Assembly: GCA_013416795.1 (NCBI GenBank) | Contig: RQSC01000006.1 | Coordinates: forward strand, 131,018-195,017 | Direction: 5' to 3' | Source of the DNA: Prasinococcaceae sp. CCMP 1430 | Taxonomy: Eukaryota; Plantae; Prasinodermophyta | DNA: 64,000 nucleotides | Shown here: positions 5,304-64,000 of the stretch, in pieces | How the letters are laid out: each line of letters opens with the position of its first letter | How positions within the stretch are numbered: position 1 is the stretch's first letter | Notes under the pieces: model-generated | Databases searched by the model: none | Seen by the model: the letters and a program-made list of their open reading frames with translations, nothing else | What the model was told of the DNA's origin: nothing | Translations under genes and position numbers: made by a program

Positions 5304-5652
5304 GACGCCGCCACGGCCGAGCTCTCGCTGGCGAACGAGTCTGTCCTCGACGAGGCGGAGTGTGCACCTGAGCATACTGTACACGGACGCAAACCCGCGC
5401 GGTGAGCGCGCTACTGTACGCCGCACCACAGACCACGCTGCCCGGGACTGTGCGTTGCGCGCGCTCCCACCCACTACTGTAAGCACTTCTTTACCAGCGA
5501 GATGGGGCGTTCGCGCGCGTTGTGGCGCACCCACGCGCGCACGAGAGAGGTCGAGAGGGAGGGAGGGAGGGAGGAAGGTTTGGAGGGATGGAGAGAGCGC
5601 CCGCACCGACGCGCGCGCCCGCGCGCCCCGCGCTTAGGCGCCCCGCGGGCGN

Positions 5653-6189
5653 TGGTGTGGTGGTTGCCAAGGAACGCCCAGACCTAGAGGCTTCGAAGAA
5701 CGAGCTGGTAGTGCAGGGCGCGACCAACGCGCGCAAGCTGAAGGAGATTGAAGACAAGATTCTGCACGTGCTGTCTTCGTCGGAGGGCAATATTCTGGAG
5801 GACGAGACGGCCATCTCCATCATCACGGAAGCAAAGTCGCTTGGCAACGAGATTGCCGAGAAGCAGGTGCTGGCCGAGCAGACCGAGAAGGAGATCGACG
5901 CCGCGCGACAGAACTACGCGCCATGCGGCAAGTACACGGCTGTGCTTTTCTTCGCAATTTCGGATTTGGCCAACATCGAGCCCATGTACCAGTATTCGCT
6001 GCCATGGTTCGTCAACCTTTTCGTCGGCTCCATCGCGGCCGCCGAGATGTCCGACGACGTGGGCCAACGCCTTGATCACGTGAACGACCACTTCACGTAT
6101 GCCCTCTACGTCAACGTGTGCCGCTCGTTGTTTGAGAAGGACAAGCTCATGTTCGCGTTCCTGCTGTGCTCGCGCATCCTGGGCGCCGA
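5653..6189 (+). CDS. Axonemal dynein heavy chain internal fragment (chimeric contig piece)
   Basis: VVAKERPDLE...LKEIEDKILHVLSSSEGNILEDE...LFFAISDLANIEPMYQYSLPWFVNLF...VCRSLFEKDKLMFAFLL is the conserved dynein region after the stalk. It starts at a single N (5652). Confidence 0.9.
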
Positions 6190-6853
6190 GGGGGCGGCGC
6201 GCTACGACCTGTACGCCATCCTGGGCATCGATGCGTCGGCGAGCTCGAGGGAGATAAAGCTCGCGTTCCGCGCGCGCGCCTTCGAGCTGCACCCCGACAT
6301 GAACGGCGCTTCTGGTGCCGCTGATGCGCACGGTGACGCCGAGGGGGGGACGGGACACGCGCACAGCAGCGCCTTTTCCGACGCGATGGCGGCGGCGAAC
6401 GCGGCATACGCGGTGCTGAGCGACGTCGAGGCGCGCGCAGTGTACGACGCCGCGCACGCCTCCTTCGGCTCCGACTCGCTCTTCGGCGGGTACGACGGGC
6501 GCCCGCTGTCCGCCACGCTGCGCCCCAACGCGGAGCGCGCGCTCTTCATCGACGAGAACGCCTGCATAGGATGCATGGCGTGCGTGCACGAGGCGCCGCA
6601 CACCATCGCGATTGAGGACGAGCGCGGGCGCGCGCGCGTGGGCACGCAACACGCCGACTCGGAGGACGCACTGGAGTCCGCGAGGCTGGTCTGCCCCACC
6701 TCCGCGGTGCATTGGGTGGCATCCGACGCCCTGGCCCTGCTTGAGTGGGTCCACCGCTCGCAGCCGCGCTCGAACTTCGTTTTCCTCAGAGAGGGCAGCG
6801 GCACGGGGGGACTGCGAGGCTGCGAGGAGGACCCCTTCGTGGCGGCCAGGTGA
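6190..6853 (+). CDS. Plastid J-domain/ferredoxin protein (CDJ3-5 / DJC76-like); 5' end missing, probably continues to 7331
   Basis: DLYAILGI...IKLAFR...LHPD J-domain, then FIDENACIGCMACVHEAP...CPTSAVHW 4Fe-4S ferredoxin motif. Confidence 0.88.
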
Positions 6854-9648: not shown

Positions 9649-10635
9649 TTCGGGCGGCCCGCTGCGGGCGCCGGCGCGCCGCGCGGCGTGGTGCACTTCG
9701 TAGGGGGCGCCGCAGTCGGAGCTTCGCCACAGCTCGTGTACGCGCTGCTACTCGAGGAGCTCTCAGCGGCGGGGTTCGCGGTGGTCGCCACGCCGTACGA
9801 CCTCACCTTCCGCCACGCCGAGTGCGCCGGGCGTGTCGCCGCGGCGCTGCCGCCCGCGATCGGCGCGCTCAGCGAGCTCTCCGCAGGCGGAATCGCGGCA
9901 GACACGCCCGTATTCGGCGTCGGCCATAGCAACGGCGCGCTTCTGCAGCTGCTGATGGGCGCGACCGCCGAGGCCGGCGGGCGCGAGCCGTACGACGCCG
10001 TGGTGCTCATGTCCTTCAACAACCGCCAGGTGGCGGATGCCATCCCGGTGCTCCCCGAGGGCGTGCTGCCGCCGGAGGTCGCCTCAACGCTCGCGGCCGC
10101 TCGCGGCACGCCCCTCGAGGGCGTGTTTGCCGCGTTCGCGGAATCCGCGCGCGGCTCGCTGCCGCCTCCGCTCGCGCCGCTCGGCGAGGCTGCGGCGCCA
10201 GCGCTCGCGCAGTTCGATTCGCTCGCGGGCGAGCTCGCCGATGGGGCGGACGATTTCGTGCCTGTGCCGCAGGAGTCGCGGCGCATCATCGAGGAGGGAT
10301 ACGCCGTTGAGGACACGCTGGTGGTGTCCTTCAAGGACGACAACCTCGACGACTCGGAGAGCATCATGGGCGCGCTTCGCGCGCGGGGCGGGCGCGTGCG
10401 TGCGCTCACGCTCCCAGGATGGCATGGCGCGCCATGCGCGCCGGGAGGCGCGGGCGCAGGCACGAGCGCGCCGGACGCTTCTCTCGCCGCTGCGCACACC
10501 ACCGCCTTCCTCGCGGACGCAGCGCTGCGGATCGCCAGGAAACGCGACTCCGCTGCCTCCACAGAAGACGACGACGCTGTCGCTGCTGACGATGCGACCA
10601 CCGACGAAGATGTTCCCGACGCCCCTGAGCAGTAG
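9649..10635 (+). CDS. DUF1350-family alpha/beta hydrolase; N-terminus missing
   Basis: PRGVVHFVGGA.VGASPQLVY..LLE.L...GF.VVATPY, nucleophile elbow GVGHSNGA, LMSFNN, TLVVSFKDDNLD. Confidence 0.85.
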   Translation, partial: FGRPAAGAGAPRGVVHFVGGAAVGASPQLVYALLLEELSAAGFAVVATPYDLTFRHAECAGRVAAALPPAIGALSELSAGGIAADTPVFGVGHSNGALLQLLMGATAEAGGREPYDAVVLMSFNNRQVADAIPVLPEGVLPPEVASTLAAARGTPLEGVFAAFAESARGSLPPPLAPLGEAAAPALAQFDSLAGELADGADDFVPVPQESRRIIEEGYAVEDTLVVSFKDDNLDDSESIMGALRARGGRVRALTLPGWHGAPCAPGGAGAGTSAPDASLAAAHTTAFLADAALRIARKRDSAASTEDDDAVAADDATTDEDVPDAPEQ

Positions 10636-10682
10636 GCAGCGCCTGGCACCCTTGAGTCGTGTTATGTGTGTATTTTATTTAT

Positions 10683-12385
10683 TCAGTCACCGCCCTTCTG
10701 TTGCCCGGCGGCCGCGCCCAGCGTGATCATGCGCCGCACCTCCGCAGCGCTGCAGCTGGCCTCTTGGCTGTCGTCGGCGACGCGCCGCAGGACGGCGAGC
10801 GCGCCCTCAAACGCCACGAAAGACACCGCGGCCATGGGAACGATCTTGGTCGAGGCCACGCGCAAGCCGCGGTAGAAGACGGGAAGCCCACCCTCGCGGT
10901 ACATAGCGCGCGCGACGGCGGCAGTGCTCATCTCCGCAGCGCTCAGCGAGCACCCGCCAAGGCACTCAAGCTGCACGCGGCGCCGAAGCACCTCTATTGG
11001 ATAAGAAACGAACATCGCCGCCCACCCCGCGACGACGCCGCACGCCAGGGAGCCCGTCGCGCCGATGGGCGCCGAGGGGTCCCCTACCACGCGATTGAGC
11101 CACGCGCCTTTCAGCGCGTCGTACATGCCGTAATTCACACCCGCATACGGGAGGATCCCCACCAGCGAGATGCCCAGGCCGCGCCCGAGCGCCACCGCGC
11201 CCCCCTCGGCCGCGACCGTGCACCGCAGCCTCGCAAGCAGCGACATGCCGTCATAAAACATCGCACCCTTCGGCACCATGGCTCGATTGCTGAGTAGATC
11301 AAGCGGATAGGTGAGCGCCTTCGAGATGCAGCCTGCCGCGGCGCCTGCGACGAAGCGCTCCCCGCTGCTCAGCTCCACTACGGCGGCCGCCTCGTCTGCG
11401 CCGCCCTCGGCCGCGGCACTCCCCCTCAGCGCCTTGCGCTTGCTCGCAAGCATCGCGTCCTTGAATTTGGTGTAAGCGAACCAATCGAGCGCGCGGTTGG
11501 GGGCCACCGCGAGGCACTTGAGTCCGTTTCCGGCGAACAAATTGCGCCAGCCTCCGGGCTCGCCCATCACCGACGCAAGGGCCTTGGCCATGCCGCCGCC
11601 CGCCGCGCGAGACGCGATGCGCCGCGCCTTGAGCACCTCTAGCGGGGCGGTCGCGGTCATGGACGCCACTCCAGCGAAGGCACCGGCAGCGAGGTCTAGC
11701 AGCGCCGAGTGGCCTTGCAGCGCCGCCAGGCCCCCACGCCCCTCGCAGCGGGTGATCGTGCCGTCGTCGTGCAACGCGAGCGTGAGCTCCCAATGTTCCG
11801 TGAGCGACTGGACCTCCCGCTCTTCCATGAGCGCTAGGAAGACGCCGAACTCATCCAGCGTGAGCGTGCGCGTATTGTCCACGTCCAGCGCGCGTAACAG
11901 ATTGGTCGCCACGTTGCGCGCGCGTAGCTCGCTCTGACTGCGCGCGCGCGGCCCTTCGGCGGCCGTGCCTATCGCCACCATTTCGGCCTCGGCGAGGGCG
12001 CGGTGCAGTTCCGTGGCGGTGATCCTCCCATCGCCGTCGCGGTCGATGACGGCGAATGCCGCCTGAATCTCTTCGGCGCGCAGGCGCACCTCTTCCGCGA
12101 CACACGCGGCGAACGCGTGCGTGCTCATCTCCCCGCGCGCCGCCAGCTGCGTGCCAACAGAGGCGAAGGGTGCGCCCAGCACGTCCACGAACGCCCGTAT
12201 CTCATCGGGAGTGACCACGCCGTCGCCATCGGCATCCACCCCCGCAACTAGTGCAACCAGGGCTGCCGACGCCTCGTCCTCGGCACCTTCGTTCTCTGCT
12301 CCCAGCACTAGCGCCGTCAGCGCCTCGGGGCCCTGACCCCGCTGCGCTGCTGCCGCCGCCGCCGCGGCCGCGGCCGCAGCTGCCG
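10683..12385 (-). CDS. EF-hand (Ca2+-regulated) mitochondrial carrier, ATP-Mg/Pi carrier-like; 5' end disrupted
   Basis: EF hands DADGDGVVTPDE, DRDGDGRITATE and DVDNTRTLTLDE. Three carrier repeats with Px[D/E]xx[K/R]-type motifs (APLEVLKAR, YPLDLLSNR, YPIEVLRRR). Confidence 0.9.
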
Positions 12386-12389
12386 CTAG

Positions 12390-12566
12390 GCCTGGTAGAT
12401 GGCGTCTTGCGGCGACATGCCCTGCTCGCGCTCGGCCTTGAGCGCGAAGTCGATCATCATGATGCCGTTCTTCTTCACGATGCCGATCAGCAGGATGATG
12501 CCGATGATGCCGATCACCCCCAGGTCGTTGCCGGTGATCATGAGCGCCAGCAGCGCCCCCACGCCA
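12390..12566 (-). other. Fragment of a bacterial RND efflux permease (MdtB/MdtC-like); probable contaminant join
   Basis: [58 protein letters not shown] matches the RND TM10 motif GIVKKNxIxxxDFA. Confidence 0.85.
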
Positions 12567-12660
12567 GCGCGGGCAGCGTTGCAGGCAGCGCAGCGACACG
12601 TCAGCACTCGCGTCGCCCTCCGATGTGGACGTGTTCGACTGAATTGCGCGGGCTTCCCCC

Positions 12661-12831
12661 ACGTCAAAACGCATTGCATGGGTCAATACCCGGTCAAAAC
12701 GCACGTCAATACGCATTGCATCGGTCCCACCCCGGTCGAAACGCGCGTCTAAACGCAGTGCATCGGTCCATACCCGGTCAAAACGCACGTCGAAACGCAG
12801 TGCATCGGTCCCACCCCGGTCGAAACGCATT
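12661..12831. repeat. Minisatellite, 4 x 42 bp
   Basis: Units cgtc(a/t/g)aaacgca(t/g)tgcatcggtc...cccggtc(a/g)aaacgc at 12662, 12704, 12746 and 12788, alternating atacccgg/caccccgg. Confidence 0.9.
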
Positions 12832-13144
12832 GCCACCACCCTTCGATCTGCAGAGGGCCCATCCGCCGCCGCGCCTCGCCCCCCTGCAAAAAAAAAAAAA
12901 AAACGGCGGCGGTTGGAGATTCAGTTCAACTGGGCGGTTATTGCGGGCGACGACGCCCGCCACGTGGCAGGGAAAATATTTAGATTACATTCGAAGTGAC
13001 GTGCCGCGCGAATATGCTGCGAATAATTCGGTGGGAGAATTGGAGGGGGGCGGCGCGCGCCGCCGGCGAGCCTGCAGCAGCAGTGTCCGCGGTGGGCGAG
13101 GCGATGGGCGTGGCGCTGGAGGGAGAGGCGGGCTCGGGCCCTGC

Positions 13145-14140
13145 TCAGGCCCAGGCGGAGGCGGAGGCGGCTGTGGCGGCTTGGGCGTCGTCGTCGGCGT
13201 CATGCGCGGCCTCAGGGGCGGGCTCGGCCGGTGCTGCCCCTGCGTCGTCAGCGCCCGCTGCCACGGCTGCTCCTCCTGCCGCAACCACCGCCGCCGCCGC
13301 CGCAGCCGCTGCGTCCGGGCCGCCGTCAGGGCGGACGCGTGCGAGCAGCTCAGCCTTCTTCGCGTCGAACTCGGCGTCCGTGAGCACGCCGGCGGCGTGG
13401 AGGTCGGCGAGCTTGCACAGCAGGTCGATGGGGTCGGCGCTACCCGCAGGGCGCGTCGCCAATTGCTGCAGCGGCACCCCCTGGTCTTCCTCGTCGCCGT
13501 GAACAGCGTCGCCGCTCACGCCGCGTGCCGGCGAGCCCGGCGGTGGGTGCGCGAGCGGAATGGCCATCATTGCGGCCACCCTCGAGGACGCGAGCGTAAA
13601 AGAGTTGCCACTCGCCTCCGACTCCTTGACAGCCTGCGTAATGCGGAGGATGGCGTCGGTGGGGTCGCGCACCGCGAAGTGCTTCACGCCCGGTCCCTGG
13701 CCGAGTGCGACAAGGTGCGGCTGGATGAGCCACCCGTTGCACAACCGTCGCGCTGGAGAGAACCGCGCGAGCGGCGGTAGCGAGCGCAGCGGGTAGTCCC
13801 AGCCGCCCTGGGTGCCATTCGTCGCGAAGAGCCGCGTTCGCGTGAGGACGACCGACCACTCCGGATGCTTGGTGTGCAGGTCGCCGTTGATGCCGCTGTT
13901 GCACAATGCGGCGCACAGGGGCGCGCACCACACGAACGGCACCAGCAGGCAGTTGAGAAGGCAGAGCTCCGCGCACGGAGTCTCCGTCCAGCGGCGGTCG
14001 AAGCCCGTCCACGCGTAGAGGAAGTCGGTGGCGCGCTCCCCTCGCGCTGCGAGCTCGCGCTCGATGTCCGGCGTGAGCACCGGCCCCTCCCTGTACGACA
14101 CCGGCGACCGCGCCGCGGGCGCGACGCGCACCGACGCCAT
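13145..14140 (-). CDS. Hypothetical protein with a hydrophobic Cys-rich segment and a SHOCT domain
   Basis: DPIDLLCKLADLHAAGVLTDAEFDAKKAELLAR matches the SHOCT consensus. ATG at 14140 lies next to a gap. Confidence 0.75.
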   Translation of the reverse strand: MASVRVAPAARSPVSYREGPVLTPDIERELAARGERATDFLYAWTGFDRRWTETPCAELCLLNCLLVPFVWCAPLCAALCNSGINGDLHTKHPEWSVVLTRTRLFATNGTQGGWDYPLRSLPPLARFSPARRLCNGWLIQPHLVALGQGPGVKHFAVRDPTDAILRITQAVKESEASGNSFTLASSRVAAMMAIPLAHPPPGSPARGVSGDAVHGDEEDQGVPLQQLATRPAGSADPIDLLCKLADLHAAGVLTDAEFDAKKAELLARVRPDGGPDAAAAAAAAVVAAGGAAVAAGADDAGAAPAEPAPEAAHDADDDAQAATAASASAWA

Positions 14141-14185: not shown

Positions 14186-14617
14186 NNNNNNNNNNNNNNN
14201 NNNNNNNNNNNNNNNNNNNNNNNNNNNNNNNNNNNNNNNNNNNNNNNNNNNNNNNNNNNNNNNNNNNNNNNNNNNNNNNNNNNNNNNNNNNNNNNNNNNN
14301 NNNNNNNNNNNNNNNNNNNNNNNNNNNNNNNNNNNNNNNNNNNNNNNNNNNNNNNNNNNNNNNNNNNNNNNNNNNNNNNNNNNNNNNNNNNNNNNNNNNN
14401 NNNNNNNNNNNNNNNNNNNNNNNNNNNNNNNNNNNNNNNNNNNNNNNNNNNNNNNNNNNNNNNNNNNNNNNNNNNNNNNNNNNNNNNNNNNNNNNNNNNN
14501 NNNNNNNNNNNNNNNNNNNNNNNNNNNNNNNNNNNNNNNNNNNNNNNNNNNNNNNNNNNNNNNNNNNNNNNNNNNNNNNNNNNNNNNNNNNNNNNNNNNN
14601 NNNNNNNNNNNNNNNNN
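14186..14617. other. Assembly gap
   Basis: Run of N flanked by (CG)n tracts. Confidence 1.
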
Positions 14618-28508: not shown

Positions 28509-28929
28509 NNNNNNNNNNNNNNNNNNNNNNNNNNNNNNNNNNNNNNNNNNNNNNNNNNNNNNNNNNNNNNNNNNNNNNNNNNNNNNNNNNNNNNNNNNNN
28601 NNNNNNNNNNNNNNNNNNNNNNNNNNNNNNNNNNNNNNNNNNNNNNNNNNNNNNNNNNNNNNNNNNNNNNNNNNNNNNNNNNNNNNNNNNNNNNNNNNNN
28701 NNNNNNNNNNNNNNNNNNNNNNNNNNNNNNNNNNNNNNNNNNNNNNNNNNNNNNNNNNNNNNNNNNNNNNNNNNNNNNNNNNNNNNNNNNNNNNNNNNNN
28801 NNNNNNNNNNNNNNNNNNNNNNNNNNNNNNNNNNNNNNNNNNNNNNNNNNNNNNNNNNNNNNNNNNNNNNNNNNNNNNNNNNNNNNNNNNNNNNNNNNNN
28901 NNNNNNNNNNNNNNNNNNNNNNNNNNNNN
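28509..28929. other. Assembly gap
   Basis: Run of N. Confidence 1.
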
Positions 28930-51243: not shown

Positions 51244-52166
51244 GGCATGGGCGCGGCGGCGCTGCTCGCCGAGTCCGACCCGGAGAAGCGCCGCTCGGAG
51301 ATGGCCGCCGCGGCGGGCGGCGACGAGATGAAGAGCGTCAAGGACTACTTCAACGGCACGGGCTTCGAGCGCTGGCAGAAGATCTACGGCGAGACGGACG
51401 AGGTGAACAAGGTGCAGCTGGACATCCGCGAGGGCCACGCGCAGACGGTGGAGAAGGTGCTCGCGTGGGTGGACGCCGAGGGCGGCGCCGACGGCATCAG
51501 CGTCGTCGACTGCGGCTGCGGCACGGGCTCGCTCACCGCGCCGCTCGCGCTGCGCGGCGCGCAGGTGTACGCCACCGACATCTCCGACGCCATGACCGGC
51601 GAGGCCGAGAAGCGCACCGCGGCCGCCATCGAGGCGGCGGGCAAGGGCGTCATGCCCACCTTCGAGCCGCTCGACCTCGAGGTGCGCCGTGCGCCAGCGC
51701 GTGCGTGCGTGTGGTGTGCACGGGTGGGTGCGGGTGCGTTTCGGTGTGCGCGTGTGCAATGGGCGTGCCCGCGTGTCTCCTCTGCCTACCACCCGGTCGC
51801 TGACCTTCCGACGCCGGCTGGCGCCCGCGCACCCCGTAGTCCGTCTCTGGCAAGTACCACACCGTGGCGTGCCTCGACGTGATGATCCACTACCCCGATG
51901 AGAAGGCCGCCGGCATGGTGAAGCACCTGGCAAGCCTCGCCGAGGACCGCGTGCTTGTCTCCTTCGCGCCCAAGACGCCCTACTACACCATCCTCAAGCG
52001 CGTGGGCGAGCTCTTCCCGGGCCCCAGCAAGGCGACGCGCGCCTACCTGCACGCCGAGGAGGACGTCGAGAAGGCGCTCAACGAGGCGGGCTGGAAGGTC
52101 GTCAAGCGCGAGATGACCGCCACGCAGTTCTACTTCTCGCGGCTGCTCGAGGCGGTGCCCATGTAA
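51244..52166 (+). CDS. chlM: Mg-protoporphyrin IX methyltransferase; intron 51682-51839, 5' end chimeric
   Basis: VKDYFNGTGFERWQKIYGETDEVNKVQLDIREGH, VDCGCGTGSL, CLDVMIHYP, LFPGPSKATRAYLH, TQFYFSRLLEA. Confidence 0.97.
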
Positions 52167-53163
52167 TGTGAACGAAAGGTGGGGCGCGTGCCGACATTTT
52201 ATGTGCACATGCGGGCACGTGCGCGTGCGCGCGCGCACGTACACGCACATGCGCACGCACGTATGCACGCGCGCGTGGGCGGAGGGGTGCGCTCTGCACT
52301 CACACATGCACGTCTCGCATCACATCTTCAGCAGGCACAATGAAATGAAGCGTGCTTGGGATCACCTCAACATGCACGCCACCACCATCGAAATTGTGTC
52401 AATGCCAACTCGTATGGCGGGGCAGCAATGGCTTGGCCTGAGGCGGGGGCAGGAGCGAAGCAAGAGCACGCGCTCTGCGCATGGCGAGGCGCGGTCGGAG
52501 CGATTTTTCTTGGCTACACGCAGAAATCCGTTCAATCAAATCATTGAAATGACTGCTCCGATGTTACGTCTCGCACTACATTACGATGACATGACACCGA
52601 TTACTAACGAACTGGCGGCGCACACGTCGGCACGCGCCCGCAGAGCTCGTGTCTATTTGCATTGGTTGGTGTCGAAACGCGCCTCTTGGGCGGCCTGGAG
52701 GCACCCGGCACCGACCGACGCGTGACCCCGACGCGCCCGGGCAACTGGGCCAGGTCGTCATGTACTCACATGCGCAGGCCTGCCATGCGCGGCGTAAACC
52801 AAGATACGGATAGATACGCGACAGTCAACGCGACCTCCGAGGGGTCGTTAGCAGTACCAGAGAGAGGAAGAGGCCAATGGCCCGTAGCCGCGTGAAGAGC
52901 TCCTCTGAATGCGAGGCGTGACCTGGGACATGCTGGCGCTGCGGCGGTCGCGCAGCGGTGCTTGCGTGCTCCGCCATGGAAGTGCGGCACACTCGCGCGC
53001 GGTCGCACGCGTGGGCGGGCCGCCACAGGAGAGGAGACACGTGGGAGTGCGAAGAGGTCACGCCTGGCCTGTCTTGCATTCTTCTCAGCGCCGCGTGGTT
53101 GCTTGCACACCTGGGCGCGCCGTCCAGCGCGTGCTACTTCACTGCCTGCTCTCTGAGCGGGCG

Positions 53164-56100
53164 ATGAATGTGGGGTCTGCCGTCGAGAAACTCGTGCGAG
53201 GTGTGGGGCTGGAGGGCGCGTTCCGGTCGTGGCCACCGTGGCGCCAGGAACGTGGAGCCAATGTGTCGGAAGATGCCGAGGCGCAGACTTTGAAGCATCG
53301 CAGACGTATCGAGCGACTCACGAAAGCCAAGGCTAAGGCGACCGCAGATGCGGAGGCGGCCGAGTTGCGCATTGCCAAGCTGGAGGCAAAGCTCGAGGAG
53401 GCTCGCGCGCAGCAGCCGACGCAGCGAGAGGGCGTGAACTGCAAGCAGGTAGATGGCGATAGCAAGGCCACACTTCCCGAACTAAAACGGAAGAAGAAGA
53501 AAACACAAAGTCATATGCCACCGAAACAGCCCGCGAGCCCAACAGAGAAAAAAAGGAAGCCATTACACAAAAGTCCGGCACACGAGGGCGCCTGCTGGCC
53601 CGCCAGGCCCGGGAGGGCGCAAACTCGGCTCGGAGCACTGCACACGCAGGTACCTGATCATTTCTGCTGGTCTTCCGATCCTAAGTCAGAGTATCCCAGC
53701 AAAGACTACGGCTGCGAGATCGACAAGCTGCGCGCCACGCGCGCTGCGGAGCTCGCTCGTGCCGCGCTGGACAGGGCGCGGTGCGCACGGGATGCTGCCG
53801 AGGCAGCCGCCAAGTCTGTGCGCATTGAGTACATCATCGCTGGAGATACAGATGACCACCATCCACCCCGCAATCCTGCTGGCGGAAACATCGCAGGCGA
53901 AGGCAACTTGTGCACATTGGCGGATAATTCGGGGAAGGAGGCGAAGAAGGCACAAGATAACCTGGATAAGGTGGTAGAGCTGGTCAAAGACGCAACCCAT
54001 TCTGCCAACGAGACGACAAAACTCGGTGCTGCCCGTGACGAGGCCGAGAGGAGGGAAAAGTCAGACAAGACAGTGACAGATGCTCAGACTGCAGCCATGT
54101 TTGCAGACAAAGCTACGGACGCAGCCAACGACGCGCGGCGCCTGGCGAACGTTGCCTGGGACCTCGGGTCAGTGAAATCAAAGTCTGAGCAGGAGCTTCA
54201 GGAGGCAGTGACGGCCCTCCTCAACGAGTCCTGCAGACCGCCATTCGCTGAGTGCATCACCGAGCAGTACCGCACGGTCAAGCTCGAGGTCCGGCAGCTT
54301 GGACACAAGAAAGAGTACGCAAAGGCGTCTACTCACTTCAAGTTCCTCATGCGACTTTGTGATGACGAGACGACAGGCAGTCCCGTCGACTGTGACACCG
54401 AACGCGCGTGCCTCTGCGAAGAAATTATGGCAGGCACGTGGAAGGTCGAGCGACTGCTCAGAAAAGGTTACGCTCGTCAGTGGGCAATTCTGCGCGCCGA
54501 TGACGAGATCTTTGGCATCCAAGGCGCGTTCGATGATGGTTCTGAGATATGGGGCGTGCTTCCTCGGCGGTGCTTCAAGAACGACCAAGCCGCGTTCAAC
54601 GCATACGACGAAGCTGACAGGAAGGTCGACACACTCTTGGATAGGATTGACGAGAACGAAGGGATCGAACAAGAACTAAAGGGTGTAGAGACTGTTCTGA
54701 AGAAGCTGCAGATCCTGGCACAGTATTCCAAGGCAGCCATGCTGGAAGCAGACCGAGGCTGCGGCGCACACCAGAAGCTGCCAGTGGTGAGAAATTGCAG
54801 GAATCGCGGGTTGCACCCTGTACTTGAGACAGTCGTGAAGCTGCCCCTCATTGGCCCCCTCATCGAGCGCTGTCACGTAGTCGAGGTGGAGATGCGCGGG
54901 CGCGTGTTCAGGCCACGACGCCGTTTGAGCTCAAAAGAGCACCAGGCGTGTGAGCTCTACAGTGACAGCCTTGAATACGACGAAAATGAGGACAAGGAAC
55001 GCTCATCTCAAGGCCTCCACGATCAGGACGCAAACTCGGAGATCAATGAAGAGAATGCCCACACGGACGAGCAGAAGCCAAATACGACGCTCTACAGTGA
55101 CAGCCTTAAAGACGACGAAAATGAGGACAAGGAACGCTCATCTCAAGGCCTCCACGATCAGGACGCAAACTCGGAGATCAATGAAGAGAATGCCCACACG
55201 GACGAGCAGAAGCCAAATGCGACCGATGTGCAACCTGGCGAGGTATCCTTTTTTCGCAACTACTTCAATTTGTCGAACCTCGAGACATTGGAGGCCGACA
55301 GGATAGTCGACAGCTTTGCCAGCCGAGGCGCGCACTATGGGTTGCTTTTGTGGTCAAACGGTGATCTCCGCATGAACGAAGAGACGCAAAATTTCGTGCG
55401 CCAGCTCAGGCACGATGCGAGAGAGCACATGGAGACCGCGCTGGAGGGGTACCTTCGCGGAGCAGCGAATTCGACGGCCATATACCAGGCATGGGCCACG
55501 GCTATGGCAGGCTACATCCTCATCCAAGGCACATCGCGCTCTTTCCCGTTCCGCGACGAATCACGTGGCCTGCGACTATTGTTGCGCAGCGCGGTGCTTG
55601 GTAGCCCCTTCGGCATGTTTCTGTGTGGCCGAATGTACATGCACGGGTCGGGCGTCGAGCGAAACGTGGAAAGGGCGATGAAGTTCTACAGCTGCGGTGG
55701 AGCCGCCGGCTCGCGGGCGTGCTTGTTCCAGCTGGGGTTTTTGCAACAATACGGCCTCAAAGATCATGTCGAAAAAGACACGGAACAGGCGTTGATATAC
55801 TACCGCAAGGCCGCTACCGAAGACACGTTCGCCGACCCAGAGGAGCCCCTGCTTGAGTCGAGTATCCTGGCTTCGATGCTGCACGAAAATGTTGGAATTG
55901 ACTTCACTGAGGACACCCTTGGTGGCAATGTCGGCTCGTTGCTCACCTGGTCACTCGCGGGACAGGCTTTTCTCTTCAGCGCGGCAACCTTGGTGATGAA
56001 CAACAGCCAGCCGTTCCACTACGCCCCGTTGCTGATAATCCTTCCCATCGTCGGAATCGTCCTCGCGTTTAACATGCTATTGTCGAACGTAGTCATGGCA

Positions 56101-56598
56101 AGACGAAACTCCCGGCGACGACGTGAGCTACTGAAGCTGTACCATTGGAAGCGATTCGCGTACGAGATGGCCACACGAGACTACGTTCTACCTCCCGTGC
56201 TCGATGGGATCCCAGGCACTGCGATCGCCCTCTATGGGGTCATTACGTATGTAGGCTATCCGGTCTGGTACGTGTTGGGCGGTATCTTCTTCCCACTCTT
56301 TGGCATCAGCAAGAAGCACAGGAAGGAGATCGAGCGCAAGCGCAGGCCCGAGATGGTCTTGCACCTGTCCAATTTGGTAGAGGTGGTCAACGTGGTCATC
56401 GCGATCACTTTTCTGGTTGCCTGGGCCGTCGTACTCGCGAATGAGGTAACCTTGCGGGACCGCGGCTGTAGCAACTGGTGGGACAACGTCTGCATGAACA
56501 GCGCTGTCAAGTGCGCAACTGAGGACTCTGAGGACCAGTGCAACGGCGAAGTGCCATTCCGTTTCGAAGCGGAAGTAACCAATATTCTCTCGGGGTAG
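53164..56598 (+). CDS. Large protein: coiled-coil N-terminus, acidic 45-aa duplication, Sel1-like repeats, C-terminal multi-TM region
   Basis: ORF longer than 1100 codons. Sel1 motifs GMFLCGRMYMHGSGVERNVERAMKFY and LFQLGFLQQYG...VEKDTEQALIYYRKAA. About 4 hydrophobic helices follow. Start uncertain (frame open from 52909). Confidence 0.8.
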   Translation: MNVGSAVEKLVRGVGLEGAFRSWPPWRQERGANVSEDAEAQTLKHRRRIERLTKAKAKATADAEAAELRIAKLEAKLEEARAQQPTQREGVNCKQVDGDSKATLPELKRKKKKTQSHMPPKQPASPTEKKRKPLHKSPAHEGACWPARPGRAQTRLGALHTQVPDHFCWSSDPKSEYPSKDYGCEIDKLRATRAAELARAALDRARCARDAAEAAAKSVRIEYIIAGDTDDHHPPRNPAGGNIAGEGNLCTLADNSGKEAKKAQDNLDKVVELVKDATHSANETTKLGAARDEAERREKSDKTVTDAQTAAMFADKATDAANDARRLANVAWDLGSVKSKSEQELQEAVTALLNESCRPPFAECITEQYRTVKLEVRQLGHKKEYAKASTHFKFLMRLCDDETTGSPVDCDTERACLCEEIMAGTWKVERLLRKGYARQWAILRADDEIFGIQGAFDDGSEIWGVLPRRCFKNDQAAFNAYDEADRKVDTLLDRIDENEGIEQELKGVETVLKKLQILAQYSKAAMLEADRGCGAHQKLPVVRNCRNRGLHPVLETVVKLPLIGPLIERCHVVEVEMRGRVFRPRRRLSSKEHQACELYSDSLEYDENEDKERSSQGLHDQDANSEINEENAHTDEQKPNTTLYSDSLKDDENEDKERSSQGLHDQDANSEINEENAHTDEQKPNATDVQPGEVSFFRNYFNLSNLETLEADRIVDSFASRGAHYGLLLWSNGDLRMNEETQNFVRQLRHDAREHMETALEGYLRGAANSTAIYQAWATAMAGYILIQGTSRSFPFRDESRGLRLLLRSAVLGSPFGMFLCGRMYMHGSGVERNVERAMKFYSCGGAAGSRACLFQLGFLQQYGLKDHVEKDTEQALIYYRKAATEDTFADPEEPLLESSILASMLHENVGIDFTEDTLGGNVGSLLTWSLAGQAFLFSAATLVMNNSQPFHYAPLLIILPIVGIVLAFNMLLSNVVMARRNSRRRRELLKLYHWKRFAYEMATRDYVLPPVLDGIPGTAIALYGVITYVGYPVWYVLGGIFFPLFGISKKHRKEIERKRRPEMVLHLSNLVEVVNVVIAITFLVAWAVVLANEVTLRDRGCSNWWDNVCMNSAVKCATEDSEDQCNGEVPFRFEAEVTNILSG
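54955..55218 (+). repeat. In-frame tandem duplication, period 135 bp (45 aa)
   Basis: LYSDSL(EY/KD)DENEDKERSSQGLHDQDANSEINEENAHTDEQKPN twice, at 54955 and 55090. Confidence 0.97.
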
Positions 56599-56957
56599 AG
56601 TGTGTGGAAGGGCGAGCGCATGGAGTGACATGGGCCGCCCTGCTTGTCGCCGAGCAAAACGTCGACACGGCGCTCGATAGGGCCGGCTTGGAGGTCGCCG
56701 GGCGCGAGATCATCGCCGCGCAGGTTACAATCTCGAAGCTGCTGGACGGTGCCTGTGTAAGATCGGGTAGGCGCACGAGCATGTGCTGCCGACTATGACG
56801 CGCGGGCATCCTCGAGCGCGCGCGAGAGAGAACCGCACGCACGCGCAAGCGCGCGTCTCAGCGTCTACGCGTGCGTGCGTGTGTGTGCCTGGGCACGCGT
56901 CCGTGCGCGAGTGCGTGTGAACGTCATCCGACGATTCGACACTGCTGCACGCCACAC

Positions 56958-57988
56958 CTACGCCTTGGAGGCGCCGCGTCGGCGGCCGACGACAAGCTTC
57001 AGCCGGCTACTCGTTCTATGTTCCGGCGACCGGAGGCACTCGAGGAACGCGGCGGCGCGGGCGGGCAGCGCGTCGCCGAAGTACTCGGCCGGAAACTTCA
57101 TCCGCTCCAGCCGCCCCCGCCAAGCCTCGAGCACCTCCGGAGAAGCGGGCCCGTCGAACGCCAGCTCCGCGTCCGTCCAGTCGCTCTGCAACACGACCTC
57201 CAGCCCCGCCGAGCGCATCGCGTCCGCCACCGCCCTCCCGGCGAAGGCGTCGTAGCCGTGCCCCTCCGCCAGCGCGCGCTCCATCCGGCGAAACTCCTCC
57301 GCCCCGCCGTCGGCCTGGGGCTCGTGGCACGAGAAGAGGCCGTCCGTCTCGACGACGGCCAGGAGGCCGCCGGGGCGCAGCAGGGACGCCCAGGAGCGCA
57401 GCAAGGGCTCCATTTCTGCGCCGAAGTACTGCACCTGTCGTTGGTTTGCATTTGTGTGTGTCACGCGCGCTGCTTGCGTCAGCGCACGGTGGTCAAGTAG
57501 CAGCGGCACGGCGTTGCACGGAGTTGGTAGATGCAATAGCGGAAGTGTCCGACGAAGACATTAGCACCAGCGCACATAGCGACCCTCGTCCACTCGACAC
57601 TCACCGCGAACGAGCTCCAGATGAGGTCCGCCGGCCGCTCAAGCCCAAGCGCGGCCAGCGAGAGGCCCCTCAGGTCGTGCCGCACGAAGCGCACGCCCGT
57701 ATGCGCCGCCTCGGCGGCGTCCAGCATCGCGGGGTCGCCGTCGACGCCGACGACCGGGTCCCAGCCCCGAGCCCGCAGCAGCGCGGCCACCTCGCCCGTC
57801 CCGCAGCCCATGTCCACCGCCGCCAGCGGCGCAGAGAAAGGAGCGCCGGGGCAGCCGCCCCCGTCCAGATCGGCTTCGCCCCGCAGCGCCACCACGGCGT
57901 CGAGCATGGTGGGCCACTGCCGCCAGGTAGCCTGCGCGCGCCGCTGCGTGGCTGTGGCTTCTTCGGCGCTGTCCTTGGATGTCGACAT
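56958..57988 (-). CDS. Class I SAM-dependent methyltransferase; exons 57988-57605 and 57434-56958
   Basis: VDMGCGTG, VVGVDGDPAMLDAA, DLIWSSFA|VQYF, LLRPGGLLAVVE. Confidence 0.9.
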
Positions 57989-58174
57989 GCGTCTCCGCGG
58001 CGGCGCGGACGGCGGCGGGTGGCGTGACCGAGAGCACGGCGGGCGAGGTGGCGTTGGTGTATAGCAGATGAGCGCGCGGTGCCGCTGCGCCAACACCACC
58101 GGCGGCGTCCGCATCGCGCGGCGCGCGGATCCTGTGGCGCCCGCAAAGCGCGACGCTTACGCGCGCCGCCGCGA

Positions 58175-58364
58175 CTACTACACTATCCTCAAGCGCGTGG
58201 GCGAGCTCTTCCCGGGCCCCAGCAAGGCGACGCGCGCCTACCTGCACGCCGAGGAGGACGTCGAGAAGGCGCTCAACGAGGCGGGCTGGAAGGTCGTCAA
58301 GCGCGAGATGACCGCCACGCAGTTCTACTTCTCGCGGCTGCTCGAGGCGGTGCCCATGTAATGT
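58175..58364 (+). repeat. Direct-repeat copy of the chlM 3' end (51980-52169)
   Basis: 190 bp with one synonymous difference seen (acc/act). Includes the stop codon; no chlM sequence upstream. Confidence 0.96.
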
Positions 58365-58903
58365 TGTCAAGCGGGGATGCCTATTTCATGTGCGCTCACT
58401 TCGCACAGGTGCACACACGCACGCGCGCGCACTCACACGAACGCGTACGCACGCACGCGCACATGCGCGCACGCCTGAGCGTGCACACCAGGGCACAGGC
58501 ACACACACACACACACACACAAGTCATGTGAATGTGCGTGCTGCATTTTGTTTCTTGGTCAAGACGCGTGTGGCTTGTCGAAGCTGTCGCAGCCTTTTCG
58601 CAGCGCCACGTGCTGAAAAAAAAGTTTGCACTGACAGTGCACACTGCGCCACACCGTGCGCGTGCGCCGCTGGCAAGGAAGACAGCGGGGAGGGGGCGAG
58701 AGGGCGCGCGCACGTGGTCCCATCCTTTCCCTGCCTGCGCGTGCGCCCACCGTCAGCGGCGGTCTCGTGCCGCGGAGGCGTGAGGGCGGTGGCGCTGGCT
58801 GGTGCCGCACATTATTGTTGACTTCGCTGCTGTCTATTGCGTCGTTCTCTGGCCAGCGGTCGTGGTCCAGCCGCAGCCCGCAGCCTCGCGGGCTCCGTCA
58901 TCG

Positions 58904-61900
58904 ATGGCTCCTGCACGCGCGTCCGCGGGTGCGTCAGCGGCTGGACCGAGTGGGTCTCAAGCTGCTTCCGGCGCGGTTCGCGTGGTGCGCATCGCCAATG
59001 ACGAGGACAAGTGGTGGGCGAAACTCAAGAAAACACTCGGAGATGCGGCTTTCAAGGCGTTAGACTGGGGACCGGACGTGCTCGAGGTTACTGGCATCGT
59101 GTTCGAATTCACGGGCGATCTGACCAAGCTTGCGATTGACGCCACGGACGGCACCGTGCCCTTCGTGAGCATTGCCAACGCTCTGGTCACGCGGGTGCGC
59201 GACAAAATGGACGAGCTGAAGCAGGTAGACGATCTGGCGGCCAGAAAGGCAAGCTGGCGCGTCGATGCGTGGCACTCAGTGATCGAGAGCATCCCGAAGG
59301 CGGGTTATCCGGCGGAGGACGACACATATGTCAAAGTTGTCGACGCTCTCGAAGAGCTAGCGCTGCTCGCGATCAAGTGGGACTCCAAGGCATTGCACAA
59401 AAGACTGTACTGGGGCGTGGCGTCTAGATACCGCGAAGACCTCGACAAGGCCATCGAGAAGCTGGATGTGCAGTATAGTGCACTTTTAGGTAAGGCGCTT
59501 ATCATCGTTTTCGGACGGATTGAAAACATCGGCAATTCCACAGCCGCCAGCACCTCTGAGTGCATCCACAACCTGCCCGGTGGCCTGCCGACGCTGCTGG
59601 GCCGCGAGGCCGAGCTTGAAGATCTGCTCAAAGCATTGGCGACGAAAGGGACGGTCACATCGCTCACGGGCATCGCCGGCGTTGGCAAGTCGCAGCTTGC
59701 GTATCGCTGCGCGTACAGCTTTGCCTTCGATGGGCCGCCTACGACAGGGGGGCGCTTCTCATGGATCCTGGACGCATCAAACGAGGACAACCTATCGAAG
59801 AGCTATGCCGACGCACTGGTGGAGCTCAGCGGCGAGAAAGCGGAGACTTTCGAAAAAGACGCCGCCGGGCACAAGTTGCCGCCGCGGGTTTTAGCAGATA
59901 AGCTGCTCACCGAGATCGCTCGCAGTGGGCGTAGCAGCATGCTCGTCTTCGACAACGTCAAGGACGACGAGGACGACGGCGGGGTCAAGTGGCTGCGGCA
60001 GCGCTACTTCTCTTCGCTGGCACGCGCAGCAAGCGTGCACGTACTGATCACGTCGCGCAGCGATGCTTTTCGGGACGAACAAGACGGTCTCGGCCACATC
60101 TGCCAAGTGCCGGTAAATGAGCTGAGCAAGGATGTCAGTATCGCCCTGCTGCTGGGTGAAAAGAACGCGGGCGCTGCCGATTGCAAAGCCGCTGAATCAA
60201 TCTATGAGCGGCTTGGTGGCCACGCGCTAGCGCTGAGCGTTACACGCAAATACATTTCCAGCGATGAGGCCAAAGAGATGTACGGTAATCGAGCGTTACA
60301 GGAGGAGGCTGAGCGCCTCGAACAGGGCGAGCGCCCGGCAAGCGCCGACGCAGCCGTGGCCGCGGCGGTGGCGAGGGCGCTGGAGATGGTGCGCCAGAAG
60401 CACCAACGAGCGTGGGCGATCCTCGGCGTGGCTGCCCATATACACCCTAAGGACATGCCCCAGACCTTACTGCTTCGCGCAGCAGAGGGCTGCACTGCCG
60501 CAGACCTGCGCGTGCTGCTGAGGCTCAACCTGCTGCAGTGGGGCGCGTCGGGGCAGGCGCAGATGCGTTCGATGCATCGCTTGCTCCAGGGTGCCGTGCG
60601 TGAGAAGCAGGGCGCTCACGCGGCGTTGGCTGCAGTATGGGCCGAGATCGCGTTGTTCGAGGAGTCAAATGTGTCCACCTGGGCGTATGCTCGGTCCTTG
60701 ATGCCGCACGTCGAGGCGATGCGCGAGTCTGTATTGACGGGCGGCGTATATGATTCGATTCAGCTTGGATTCGTCAATAATGCAGAGGGCTTCATATGCG
60801 AGCAATTGCTCGGTGACTACGACCGGGCGCTGCAGGCGTACGATGTGACGCTGCGAGTCGAGCGCGAGGTGCTCGGCGACGACCATCCGGAAGTCGCAAC
60901 GACGCGCAACAATATTGGGTCGGTATATCACGCCCAAGGACGCCACGCCGAGGCGCTGCAGGAGTTCGACGAGGCGCTGCGAGTCAGGCGCGAGGCGCTC
61001 GGCGACGCCCACACGGACGTTGCACAGACGCGCAACAATATTGGAATGGTATATCACGACCAAGGGCGCCACGCCGAGGCGCTGCAGGAGTACGAAAAGG
61101 CGCTGCGAGTCAGGCGCGAGGCGCTCGGCGACGACCATCCGAGCGTTGCAACGGCGCGCAACAATATTGGGATGGTATATCGGGCCCAAGGACGCCACGC
61201 CGAGGCGCTGCAGGAGTACGAGGAGGTGCTGCGAGTCAAGCGCGAGGCGCTTGGCGACGACCATCCGGACGTTGCAGAGACGCGCAACAATATCGTGTCG
61301 GTGTATTGGGCCCAAGGACGCCACGCCGAGGCGCTGCAAGAGTTCGAGGAGGCGCTGCGAGTCAAGTGCGAGGCGCTCGGCGACGACCATCCGCGCGTTG
61401 CAACGGCGCGCAACAATATTGGGATGGTATATGACGCCCAAGGACGCCACGCCGAGGCGCTGAAAGAGTACGAGGAGGTGCTGCGAGTCAAGCGCGCGGC
61501 GCTCGGCGATGACCATCCGAGCGTTGCAACGACGCGCAACAATATTGGCTCGGTATATGACGCCCAAGGACGCCACGCCGAGGCGCTGAAAGAGTACGAG
61601 GAGGCGCTGCGAGTCTGGCGCGAGGCGCTCGGCGACGACCATCCGCGCGTTGCAACGGCGCGCAACAATATCGGGTCGGTATATGACGCCCAAGGACGCC
61701 ACGCCGAGGCGCTGCACGAGTTCGAGGAGGCGCTGCGAGTCAGGCGCGAGGCGCTCGGCGACGACCACCCGGACGTTGCAGAGACGCGCAACAATATCGT
61801 GTCGGTGTATTGGGCTCAAGGACGCCACGCCGAGGCGCTGCGGGAGGTTGAGGAGGCGCTGCGAGTCTTCCGCTTTGTCTTCGGCGACGACCATCCCAGC

Positions 61901-61960
61901 GTTGCAACTGCGCGCAACAATGTTGAATATGTACGTCGTGCTCAGGGACGGCACGGTTAG
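58904..61960 (+). CDS. NLR-like STAND protein: helical (MLKL/HeLo-like) N-terminus, NB-ARC, 42-aa TPR array
   Basis: NLP...GREAEL, Walker A GIAGVGKSQLA, Walker B LVFDNV, sensor VLITSR, LGGHALAL, SMHRLLQ, then LGDDHP.VA..RNNIG.VY..QG repeats. Intronless. Confidence 0.93.
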   Translation: MAPARASAGASAAGPSGSQAASGAVRVVRIANDEDKWWAKLKKTLGDAAFKALDWGPDVLEVTGIVFEFTGDLTKLAIDATDGTVPFVSIANALVTRVRDKMDELKQVDDLAARKASWRVDAWHSVIESIPKAGYPAEDDTYVKVVDALEELALLAIKWDSKALHKRLYWGVASRYREDLDKAIEKLDVQYSALLGKALIIVFGRIENIGNSTAASTSECIHNLPGGLPTLLGREAELEDLLKALATKGTVTSLTGIAGVGKSQLAYRCAYSFAFDGPPTTGGRFSWILDASNEDNLSKSYADALVELSGEKAETFEKDAAGHKLPPRVLADKLLTEIARSGRSSMLVFDNVKDDEDDGGVKWLRQRYFSSLARAASVHVLITSRSDAFRDEQDGLGHICQVPVNELSKDVSIALLLGEKNAGAADCKAAESIYERLGGHALALSVTRKYISSDEAKEMYGNRALQEEAERLEQGERPASADAAVAAAVARALEMVRQKHQRAWAILGVAAHIHPKDMPQTLLLRAAEGCTAADLRVLLRLNLLQWGASGQAQMRSMHRLLQGAVREKQGAHAALAAVWAEIALFEESNVSTWAYARSLMPHVEAMRESVLTGGVYDSIQLGFVNNAEGFICEQLLGDYDRALQAYDVTLRVEREVLGDDHPEVATTRNNIGSVYHAQGRHAEALQEFDEALRVRREALGDAHTDVAQTRNNIGMVYHDQGRHAEALQEYEKALRVRREALGDDHPSVATARNNIGMVYRAQGRHAEALQEYEEVLRVKREALGDDHPDVAETRNNIVSVYWAQGRHAEALQEFEEALRVKCEALGDDHPRVATARNNIGMVYDAQGRHAEALKEYEEVLRVKRAALGDDHPSVATTRNNIGSVYDAQGRHAEALKEYEEALRVWREALGDDHPRVATARNNIGSVYDAQGRHAEALHEFEEALRVRREALGDDHPDVAETRNNIVSVYWAQGRHAEALREVEEALRVFRFVFGDDHPSVATARNNVEYVRRAQGRHG

Positions 61961-62040
61961 GCGCTGCGAAGCGACCACGTCGCCCATGGCGGCGACCATC
62001 CGGACGTTGCACGGACGTGCGACGTTATTGGTCTGATAGT
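60826..62040 (+). repeat. 126-bp tandem TPR array: 8 full units, partial terminal units and a decayed unit beyond the stop
   Basis: aacaat anchors at 60908, 61034, 61160, 61286, 61412, 61538, 61664, 61790 and 61916; remnant ggcgaccatccggacgttgca at about 61991. Confidence 0.97.
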
Positions 62041-62723
62041 GATCGCGCTTGTTGGCTTCGCAGCAATGACAAACATGCCATTCAACGTACACACACGTGC
62101 ACTGTACCACCGCACGTACGTACCCTGGGAGCTATGCCTGCACGTGTGTGTTGCGAAGCTCCCGCCTCCCCTGCTGCGCGGGCCGGCTTCGCACACAGGC
62201 ACGGGCGGTGCGGCTGGTGGAGCGGTGGTGCCAATGCTGTCATTGCGACGAGCGCGTGCCCGCACCGGGGTCCGGGGCACTCCTCTCGCCGCGATGCGGT
62301 CGCACGCCCAGAGTTCAACCCAGCTTTTCAGCCCGTCCACGCCGCCACGGCCACAGTCAGCGCCTCGGGCGTGCCCGTGGGGGTGAGCGCGAGCGCCGCC
62401 TTTTCGCGCAGTTGCTCCGCGCATTTGCATGTACTTACACATGTACATTATACGGTGGATGCTCTCAAAGCTTCCCCATCCGTTCTATTCTTTCGCCAGG
62501 AAAGACGCGCGACGGTGCGCGTCCACCGTCGAGTGCGCGCGGTCCGCGCGAGCCGCCGAGGGGGCGGGTGCTGCTCGCGCAAGCTCCGCGAAATTACATC
62601 ACATTTTCACACACATAATTTACGCTGTGCGAACTCAAAGAGTCCAATTCCGAACGTTTTTTTTGCCGGGAAAGCGCCGGGCGGGTGCCGGTCAGATTTT
62701 TCCGGCGCGGATCGCGATTCTCC

Positions 62724-63020
<297 letters not shown>

Positions 63021-63496: not shown

Positions 63497-63535
<39 letters not shown>

Positions 63536-64000
63536 CACACACACACACACACACGCACACACACACACACACACACACACTTACACACACACACACACAT
63601 TCACACTTGCACACACTGACACCCACACTGACACGAACGCTGACGCCCACACAGGCGGTCTGCGGCAACGACCTCGTGACGTACCTCAACATCTGCTGGG
63701 CGAACTGCGCGGGCACCACGCTTCGCTCCGAGGGCGCGTGCGTGGAGGGCCTCGAGGAGATCGCCAAGGAGGAGCTGGGACAGACGGACGACGACACGGC
63801 CTTGCTCGTGGGGGACGACGCCGACGCGCAGGAGGAAGGGGTCCCGGCCGTGCCTGCCGGTGAGGGAGGCGGCGACGACGACCTCGGGGGCGCGGCGGTC
63901 GGCGCGGCCGGGCCGCAGCCCGCCGATGCGGTCGCGGACTACGAGGGCGCGGGCGAGGGGGGTGGCGAGGACGACTCGGACGTGCCGTCGCCGCCGCCGC
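63118..64000 (+). CDS. Secreted or membrane-anchored Kazal-domain protein; intron 63412-63654, 3' partial
   Basis: Hydrophobic leader, then CPDCTFDVE|AVCGNDLVTYLNICWANCAG.....EGAC (Kazal Cys pattern) and an acidic tail. Confidence 0.85.

Follow-up and report, generated by a model that had tools for sequence, protein, structure and literature searches.

We analyzed a 64,000-nucleotide (nt) stretch of a contig from the marine green alga Prasinococcaceae sp. CCMP 1430 (RQSC01000006.1, positions 131,018 to 195,017 of the forward strand; hereafter the window, whose numbering is used throughout), in which two long genes of low GC content and a methyltransferase gene between them had been proposed to form a defense cluster. 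The two genes are uninterrupted frames on the plus strand. ORF1 (open reading frame 1; 52909-56598, 1229 codons) codes for a membrane protein with Sel1 repeats whose long N-terminal region is lineage-specific, and ORF2 (58802-61960, 1052 codons, first ATG at 58904) encodes an NLR-like STAND protein. The methyltransferase gene is on the minus strand, and upstream of ORF1 is chlM, encoding Mg-protoporphyrin IX methyltransferase, a native housekeeping neighbor. We think it probable that the stretch holds three independent genes and not one system: ORF1 is in a segment that a close relative lacks, the methyltransferase gene is an ancestral neighbor of chlM, and the NLR-like gene is beyond a separate rearrangement scar.

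ORF1 and ORF2 are intronless and differ in composition from the genes around them. The two frames have a GC content of 0.56-0.64, whereas that of the whole window is about 0.70 (the GC content of the Prasinoderma coloniale genome is 69.8%; PMC7455551). At third codon positions, GC content (GC3) reaches 0.68 in ORF1 (first and second positions, 0.61 and 0.42) and 0.73 in ORF2, compared to 0.97-1.0 in the exons of chlM and 0.89-0.91 in those of the methyltransferase gene. Tandem Repeats Finder detected only two tandem repeats in the frames, a 135-nt unit present twice in ORF1 (54954-55223, 97-98% identity) and a 126-nt unit present 8.7 times in ORF2 (60826-61925, 86% identity). It found no mono- to trinucleotide arrays within either frame, and microsatellites reappeared in the flanks. 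The preliminary description had reported two long, intronless, microsatellite-free frames of low GC content, with Sel1 repeats in one, TPRs in the other, and recent internal duplication in both, and had proposed a scan of GC3. The frame calls, repeat analysis, and GC3 values agree with that description, as do the Pfam matches described below. An exact-match look-up of the products of the open reading frames in the window returned no entry in the sequence collection.

ORF1 is in a segment of approximately 4.7 kb that is missing from a close relative. A TARA scaffold from this relative (L003; 1923 nt, GC 0.70) contains chlM and the methyltransferase gene as convergent neighbors, with approximately 105 nt between the two stop codons. 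Positions 902-1923 of the scaffold correspond to 52249-51225 of the window (96% identity) and positions 1-887 correspond to 57798-56955 (88.5%), with approximately 14 nt between the two parts. The last exon of chlM in the window (51864-52166, plus strand; GC3 of 0.97) is 99% identical to that in the scaffold; its residues are those of an open frame in a downstream copy (see below) that matches Pfam Mg-por_mtran_C (3e-20). Absent from the scaffold is the region from 52250 to 56954 (taken without regard to strand), which comprises ORF1 with flanks of 660 nt (upstream) and 356 nt (downstream). As the close relative lacks this segment in its orthologous spacer, ORF1 is an accessory (presence/absence) gene, as had been anticipated when a comparison of strains was proposed.

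The ends of the segment do not resemble those of a mobile element. Its edges are in (CACG)n/(CGTG)n low-complexity tracts, and the end-to-end matches, of 9-17 nt, were low-complexity sequence only. We found no terminal inverted repeats, target-site duplication, integrase, or transposase, and no other gene in the segment. The likeliest origin of ORF1 at this site is an insertion into the 3' spacer that separates the convergent chlM and methyltransferase genes, and we give insertion here roughly twice the weight of loss from the relative.

The methyltransferase gene is a native neighbor of chlM. It is split into exon 1 (57988-57601, beginning MSTSKD, with a class I S-adenosylmethionine (SAM)-binding fold) and exon 2 (57434-56958, including the stop codon; 95% identical to L003), separated by a GTGAGT...CAG intron (57435-57600). 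We placed the junction using the sequence and a tblastn alignment to a 57%-identical homolog of 274 amino acids (aa), P0014. The exons were searched individually, and matched Pfam Methyltransf_25 (38.9 bits, cutoff 27; exon 1) and Methyltransf_11 (32.0 bits, cutoff 21.2). The nearest relatives were P0014 and a 92%-identical metagenomic fragment; others were bacterial-type proteins of approximately 250 aa, one of them from a metagenome-assembled genome of Planctomycetota. The nearest NCBIfam models were small-molecule enzymes such as Tam and BioC, all far under cutoff. We considered a DNA methyltransferase of a restriction-modification or defense system and rejected it: the PADLOC models mad2, MTase_II, and DrmMII matched no more than the SAM-binding region (aa 96-172). 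The intron, the GC3 (0.89 in exon 1 and 0.91 in exon 2), and the position beside chlM in L003 indicate that the gene is native, and its place in L003 makes it the ancestral neighbor of chlM and not part of a cargo. Judging from its sequence, it is a native, intron-bearing, bacterial-type small-molecule SAM methyltransferase. Its relatives are of bacterial type, yet it has an intron and the GC3 of the host, a combination that could reflect an ancient acquisition from bacteria.

A second rearrangement appears to separate the methyltransferase gene from ORF2. The last 190 nt of chlM (copy A, 51980-52169, plus strand, identified by repeat search and alignment and identical to L003 at 190 of 190 sites) recur on the same strand at 58175-58364 (copy B), between the 5' end of the methyltransferase gene and the NLR-like gene. 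The two copies differ by one mismatch, at which copy B has the derived base. Copy B begins in the middle of an exon, extends to 3 nt beyond the stop codon, and is a non-functional fragment. In non-coding sequence, the window and L003 have diverged by 4-21%, whereas the copies differ at 1 of 190 sites, indicating that copy B is a recent templated fragment or has been homogenized. It resembles templated filler left where a break was repaired and, unless it was homogenized, would postdate by far the divergence from the TARA relative. We take it as the sign of a second rearrangement, also recent, in the interval from the methyltransferase gene to the NLR-like gene. The repeat also raised the possibility of a 6-kb cargo bracketed by chlM sequences. 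The repeat is real, but we rejected this arrangement because the methyltransferase gene already adjoins chlM in L003. ORF1 and ORF2 would thus have been brought next to each other by two or more recent structural changes in the surroundings of the methyltransferase gene: the indel of ORF1 and the templated copy of the 190-nt chlM 3' end.

ORF1 is a coding sequence with a Sel1 solenoid and a C-terminal membrane module. The probability that a frame of this length would be open by chance is approximately 1e-19, as calculated from base composition. Translation likely starts at M86 (53164), giving a protein of 1144 aa. The N-terminal region of approximately 740 aa is charged, partly lysine-rich, and of coding-like composition, and had no relatives in Pfam, ESM-Atlas, the PDB, or the homology searches. 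The tandem duplication (54954-55223; 45 aa per unit, 3 nt differences between copies) is in an acidic linker. It is followed by the Sel1-like solenoid (55390-55884), in which Pfam Sel1 (PF08238) detected two repeats (52.3 bits, cutoff 30.7). An AlphaFold2 model of the C-terminal part, made from the family alignment (predicted local distance difference test score (pLDDT) of 83, predicted template modeling score of 0.76), has four helix pairs of the Sel1 type and then four long helices. In fold searches, the Sel1 part matched HcpC (Z 15.1, root-mean-square deviation of 2.8 over 128 residues), SEL1L (Z 13.9), and LpnE (Z 13.9), and it was the only part to which a fold was assigned. The matches to the membrane module (CtMrs2, Z 11.8; the AhlB pore, Z 10.4) reflect generic long helices and are below the meaningful level for helical bundles.

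The membrane module (55876-56595), identified by phmmer, alignment, and hydropathy, belongs to a family of its own. It consists of a helix with the motif WxLAGQAFLF, a helix with LLxxLPxxGI, an extra hydrophobic insert, a final transmembrane (TM) helix, and the tail GCSNWWDNVC; three 19-aa windows reach a Kyte-Doolittle score of at least 1.5. Relatives of ORF1 cover only the last 390 or so residues, the best being P0001, a 1008-aa TARA protein (36% identity over 387 aa). Searching exhaustively by phmmer with the 240-aa module, we obtained 43 cluster representatives (E<=1e-3) of 87-1008 aa, mostly 200-700 aa. The module is always C-terminal in these and in most cases follows Sel1 repeats, which were detected in 23 of 35 family members. 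The named members are from the diatoms Stephanopyxis turris and Attheya sp. and one MMETSP transcript; others are from TARA and JGI contigs. Based on these sequences, Sel1 repeats followed by this module define an uncharacterized family of diatoms and other marine protists. ORF1 aligns along the whole core of this family and retains its invariant and near-invariant columns, and it differs from typical members in being 2-4 times longer, in having the extra hydrophobic insert, and in being accessory at its locus.

Two further observations concern this family. On two Mb-scale ENA contigs (L005:6647-9490 and L006:2319-7203), Sel1-TM members adjoin genes for an RVT_2 retrotransposon and DDE_Tnp_4. 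Separately, Pfam 8xMP (PF24838) matched ORF1 at 15.2 bits, under its cutoff of 30, and matched 5 of 35 family members (best E 7.7e-5). The sub-threshold matches correspond to the first two membrane helices of the family (55948-56085 in the window). We found no literature on 8xMP.

We infer the functions proposed here from the observed gene structures, family relations, presence or absence of the ORF1 segment, and the repeat. Rather than an effector, the ORF1 module appears to be a membrane anchor shared by a conserved family. The protein would be a membrane-anchored scaffold in which the Sel1 groove and the long charged N-terminal region bring partner proteins to the membrane, and it would act neither as a pore nor as a toxin. 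A Sel1 solenoid serving as a protein-binding scaffold is what ORF1 would share with SEL1L/Hrd3 and the bacterial Sel1-like-repeat adaptors HcpC and LpnE, and SEL1L/Hrd3 is likewise anchored in the membrane at its C-terminus. ORF1 departs from these proteins in its low number of repeats (2-4), in its N-terminal region of 740 aa, which has no relatives, and in lacking, on inspection, a signal peptide; its multi-helix membrane module and cysteine-containing tail replace the single anchor of SEL1L/Hrd3. With no hydrophobic N-terminus, 2-4 repeats, and 3-4 hydrophobic helices, it does not have the features of SEL1L/Hrd3 as an adaptor of endoplasmic-reticulum-associated degradation.

ORF2 encodes a protein with the three-part layout of an NLR. 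An N-terminal helical head (58904-59419, aa 1-172) is followed by a linker and a P-loop STAND NTPase (59420-60817) and then by nine TPR units of 42 aa each, ending with the stop codon (60818-61960). The motifs of the NTPase are of the NB-ARC type and are in the correct order: Walker A, GIAGVGKS (aa 256-263, 59669-59692); Walker B, MLVFDNV (aa 346-352, 59939-59959); RNBS-B/sensor-1 (TSR/TTR), LITSRS (aa 381-386, 60044-60061); GLPL, GGHALAL (aa 438-444, 60215-60235); and MHD, MHRLLQ (aa 557-562, 60572-60589). The equivalents of GLPL and MHD are variants that we assigned by inspection. ORF2 did not reach the Pfam gathering cutoff for either NB-ARC (PF00931; 20.9 bits, cutoff 23.5) or NACHT (PF05729; 25.1 bits, cutoff 26.7); AAA_25 scored 27.5 bits (cutoff 27). 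The NCBIfam model FxSxx_TPR, for a bacterial NTPase-TPR protein, matched aa 230-568 at 2e-20 and 72.7 bits, far under the model cutoff of 300.

The TPR array matched Pfam TPR_12 (442.8 bits) and TPR_10 (362.8 bits) and consists of near-identical units. Mean nt identity among the eight core units is 86.6%. Their variable columns fall about equally on the three codon positions (13/16/13), and amino acid variation peaks at unit positions 15, 25, and 38. A decayed unit, recognized by sequence comparison, directly follows the stop codon (61961-62038), indicating that the array was formerly longer. We conclude, from these domain and motif assignments, that ORF2 is an NLR-like STAND protein with an unassigned helical head, an NB-ARC-type NTPase, and nine TPR units, in agreement with its earlier designation as an NLR.

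The head of ORF2 is not related to those of its closest homologs. A word search found two relatives, EukProt PRCOL_00002404 and TARA P0013, both 42% identical to ORF2 and both only from aa 173 onward, indicating that their heads are unrelated to that of ORF2. No Pfam family matched aa 1-249 at E<=0.1, the best phmmer match in the PDB was an unrelated protein (E 0.24), and the searches made returned no sequence relatives of the head. MLKL_N, HeLo, HeLo-like, Goodbye, and HET gave no sequence or profile match. A single-sequence AlphaFold2 prediction was helical but is unusable as a model (pLDDT of 39.4). In ESM-Atlas, the head had feature matches to fungal clusters, among them one (0.90) in which 36% of members have MLKL_N, which we treat as a lead only. 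A membrane-acting domain had been suggested for each gene. ORF1 does have a hydrophobic C-terminal module, anchor-like and not effector-like, whereas the head of ORF2 has no hydrophobic segment by hydropathy and no assignable fold.

By analogy with other STAND proteins, the TPR array of ORF2 would sense a ligand, the NB-ARC-type NTPase would switch and oligomerize, and the helical head would deliver the output. ORF2 would be one member of a family of NLR-like STAND proteins in this alga. NB-ARC-TPR STAND proteins that are NLR-like have been described among fungi as well as bacteria (Dyrka et al. 2014, PMC4986451). With these, and with the NB-ARC-TPR genes of brown algae, ORF2 shares a variable head, an NB-ARC-type P-loop NTPase, and a TPR array, and, as in the fungal and bacterial proteins, heads in its family are swapped between paralogs that have a common nucleotide-binding domain. 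It differs from all of them in that its head belongs to no recognized family, its NB-ARC and NACHT scores are just under cutoff, and its host is a picoalga of the green lineage. In plants, the only class of NLR-like proteins with TPRs that has been described is TNP (TIR-NB-ARC-TPR) (PMC9806590). ORF2 resembles TNP in having an NB-ARC-type domain followed by TPRs, in Viridiplantae, with P-loop and TSR/TTR-, GLPL-, and MHD-type motifs in the same order. Unlike TNP, it has a helical head instead of TIR, and whereas TNPs are conserved and low-copy, the ORF2 family is divergent, with 42% identity between the nearest members found. On the scaffold that encodes one of these members (TARA_SAMEA6030248 scaffold_1619, L002:13359-16622), P0013 is followed by two TPR-only genes whose units are of the same type.

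The low GC3 of ORF1 and ORF2 appears to be an old property of their families. P0001, the closest homolog of ORF1, has a GC3 of 0.68 on a scaffold whose flanking genes are at 0.90-1.0, and the homolog of the NLR-like gene has a GC3 of 0.785 next to genes at 0.82-0.99. Since homologs that are 36-42% identical also have low GC3 on other GC-rich scaffolds, the composition is an old family trait and not a sign of recent foreign or joint arrival. This bears on the possibility that the ORF1 segment is foreign DNA, recently acquired from another protist or a giant virus and not yet adapted to the composition of the host. Such an origin would be consistent with the absence of the segment from the close relative, the difference in GC3 between ORF1 (0.68) and both flanking genes (0.9-1.0), the lack of introns, the diatom origin of the named family members, and an N-terminal region of 740 aa that matches nothing. 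The equal GC3 of P0001 amid GC-rich genes points instead to a stable family trait, and the ends of the segment have no hallmarks of a transposon or an integrase. Scans of IMG/VR, limited to peptide patterns, found no viral relatives of ORF1 or of the NLR-like gene, and we rejected a giant-virus origin for both. Scans of JGI metagenomes for NLR orthologs and for Sel1-TM relatives were both empty. We consider a recent foreign origin of the segment unlikely.

ORF1 and ORF2 are not found together elsewhere. At none of the seven other loci that we checked does a Sel1-TM gene accompany an NB-ARC/TPR gene. On L002, the neighbors of the homolog of the NLR-like gene are kinase and bromodomain genes and the two TPR-only genes, with no Sel1-TM gene within 10 kb, and neither the ORF1 homolog on L001 nor the family members on L005-L007 have an NB-ARC/TPR neighbor. 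There were no paralogs of ORF1 or of the NLR-like gene within the window. PADLOC gave only generic TPR and SAM-binding matches, with no specific defense family and no model matching ORF1. We looked for a motif of the NWD2/HET-S kind common to ORF1 and the head of the NLR-like protein and found none. The claim that the three genes form one defense cluster was therefore not supported: the linkage is absent from all seven loci, the methyltransferase gene is on the opposite strand with an intron, host-like composition, and an ancestral place beside chlM, and the NLR-like gene is past the 190-nt scar.

Several considerations weigh against our interpretation. The relative may instead have lost ORF1. 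Given the generic long-helix fold matches, the ORF1 module may have a role as a channel or pore. One Logan contig (SRR29340341, L008) has a Sel1-TM gene (5282-6614) and, 4 kb away on the other strand, a gene for a 1083-aa AAA_16 ATPase (10559-13810), the only one of four longer Sel1-TM contexts with a STAND-like neighbor. Finally, two accessory-looking, compositionally deviant, intronless genes are less than 2.3 kb apart, which could be more than coincidence.

An alternative is a two-component immune locus, comparable to the NLR/effector gene pairs of fungi or to bacterial STAND systems with adjacent effectors, in which the NLR-like protein senses a trigger, the Sel1-TM protein is its membrane partner (executor, guardee, or anchor), and the methyltransferase is a bystander. 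The two genes are adjacent and on the same strand, both are intronless with low GC3 and recent internal duplications, ORF1 is accessory, and the AAA_16 gene on L008 is near a family member. However, a native gene on the opposite strand and a rearrangement scar are between ORF1 and the NLR-like gene, the homologs of each are found without the other on L001, L002, and L005-L007, and there is neither a common signaling motif nor a PADLOC match for ORF1. We judge a two-component locus to be quite improbable. We give even less credence to a broader version, in which the chlM-methyltransferase neighborhood is a landing site that gathers fast-evolving, intronless accessory genes of low GC3 through break repair, with the Sel1-TM protein as membrane partner or executor of the adjacent NLR-like protein, making a two-gene innate-immunity module in the deepest-branching phylum of green plants. 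Taken together, we regard the defense island as a weak, minority possibility and favor three independent genes.

It is very unlikely that the low-GC genes or the 190-nt repeat are a mis-join in a draft assembly or a contaminant: the window does contain runs of N and a repeated block is the type of product that mis-joins give, but there is no N between 51157 and 62925, both frames are flanked on one contig by native, GC-rich, intron-bearing genes, the repeat copies differ at one base and end abruptly in unique sequence, and both genes have homologs on independent GC-rich marine scaffolds.

The remainder of the window has features of a draft assembly. Runs of N at 14186-14617 (432 nt) and 28509-28929 (421 nt), together with single N dispersed across the window, account for dips in the GC profile. 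At 62723-63019, (CA)~101 and (GT)~37 tracts are opposed across a gap of 17 N, forming an 85-nt inverted repeat that is 93% complementary, and a further (AC)65 tract is at 63499-63628. The window also encodes a kinesin and contains spliceosomal introns.

Based on our analyses, we believe that the apparent island was assembled by recent rearrangements around a native gene. We urge caution in inferring functional clusters from adjacency and low GC content. Flanked by two convergent genes that are conserved, the gene for the large Sel1-membrane protein provides a clean case of presence/absence, and the analysis delineates an uncharacterized family, widespread in marine protists, in which Sel1 repeats are combined with a membrane module. 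If the NLR-like genes of this early-branching green alga act in immunity, then NB-ARC-TPR receptors with helical heads would extend beyond fungi, bacteria, and brown algae.

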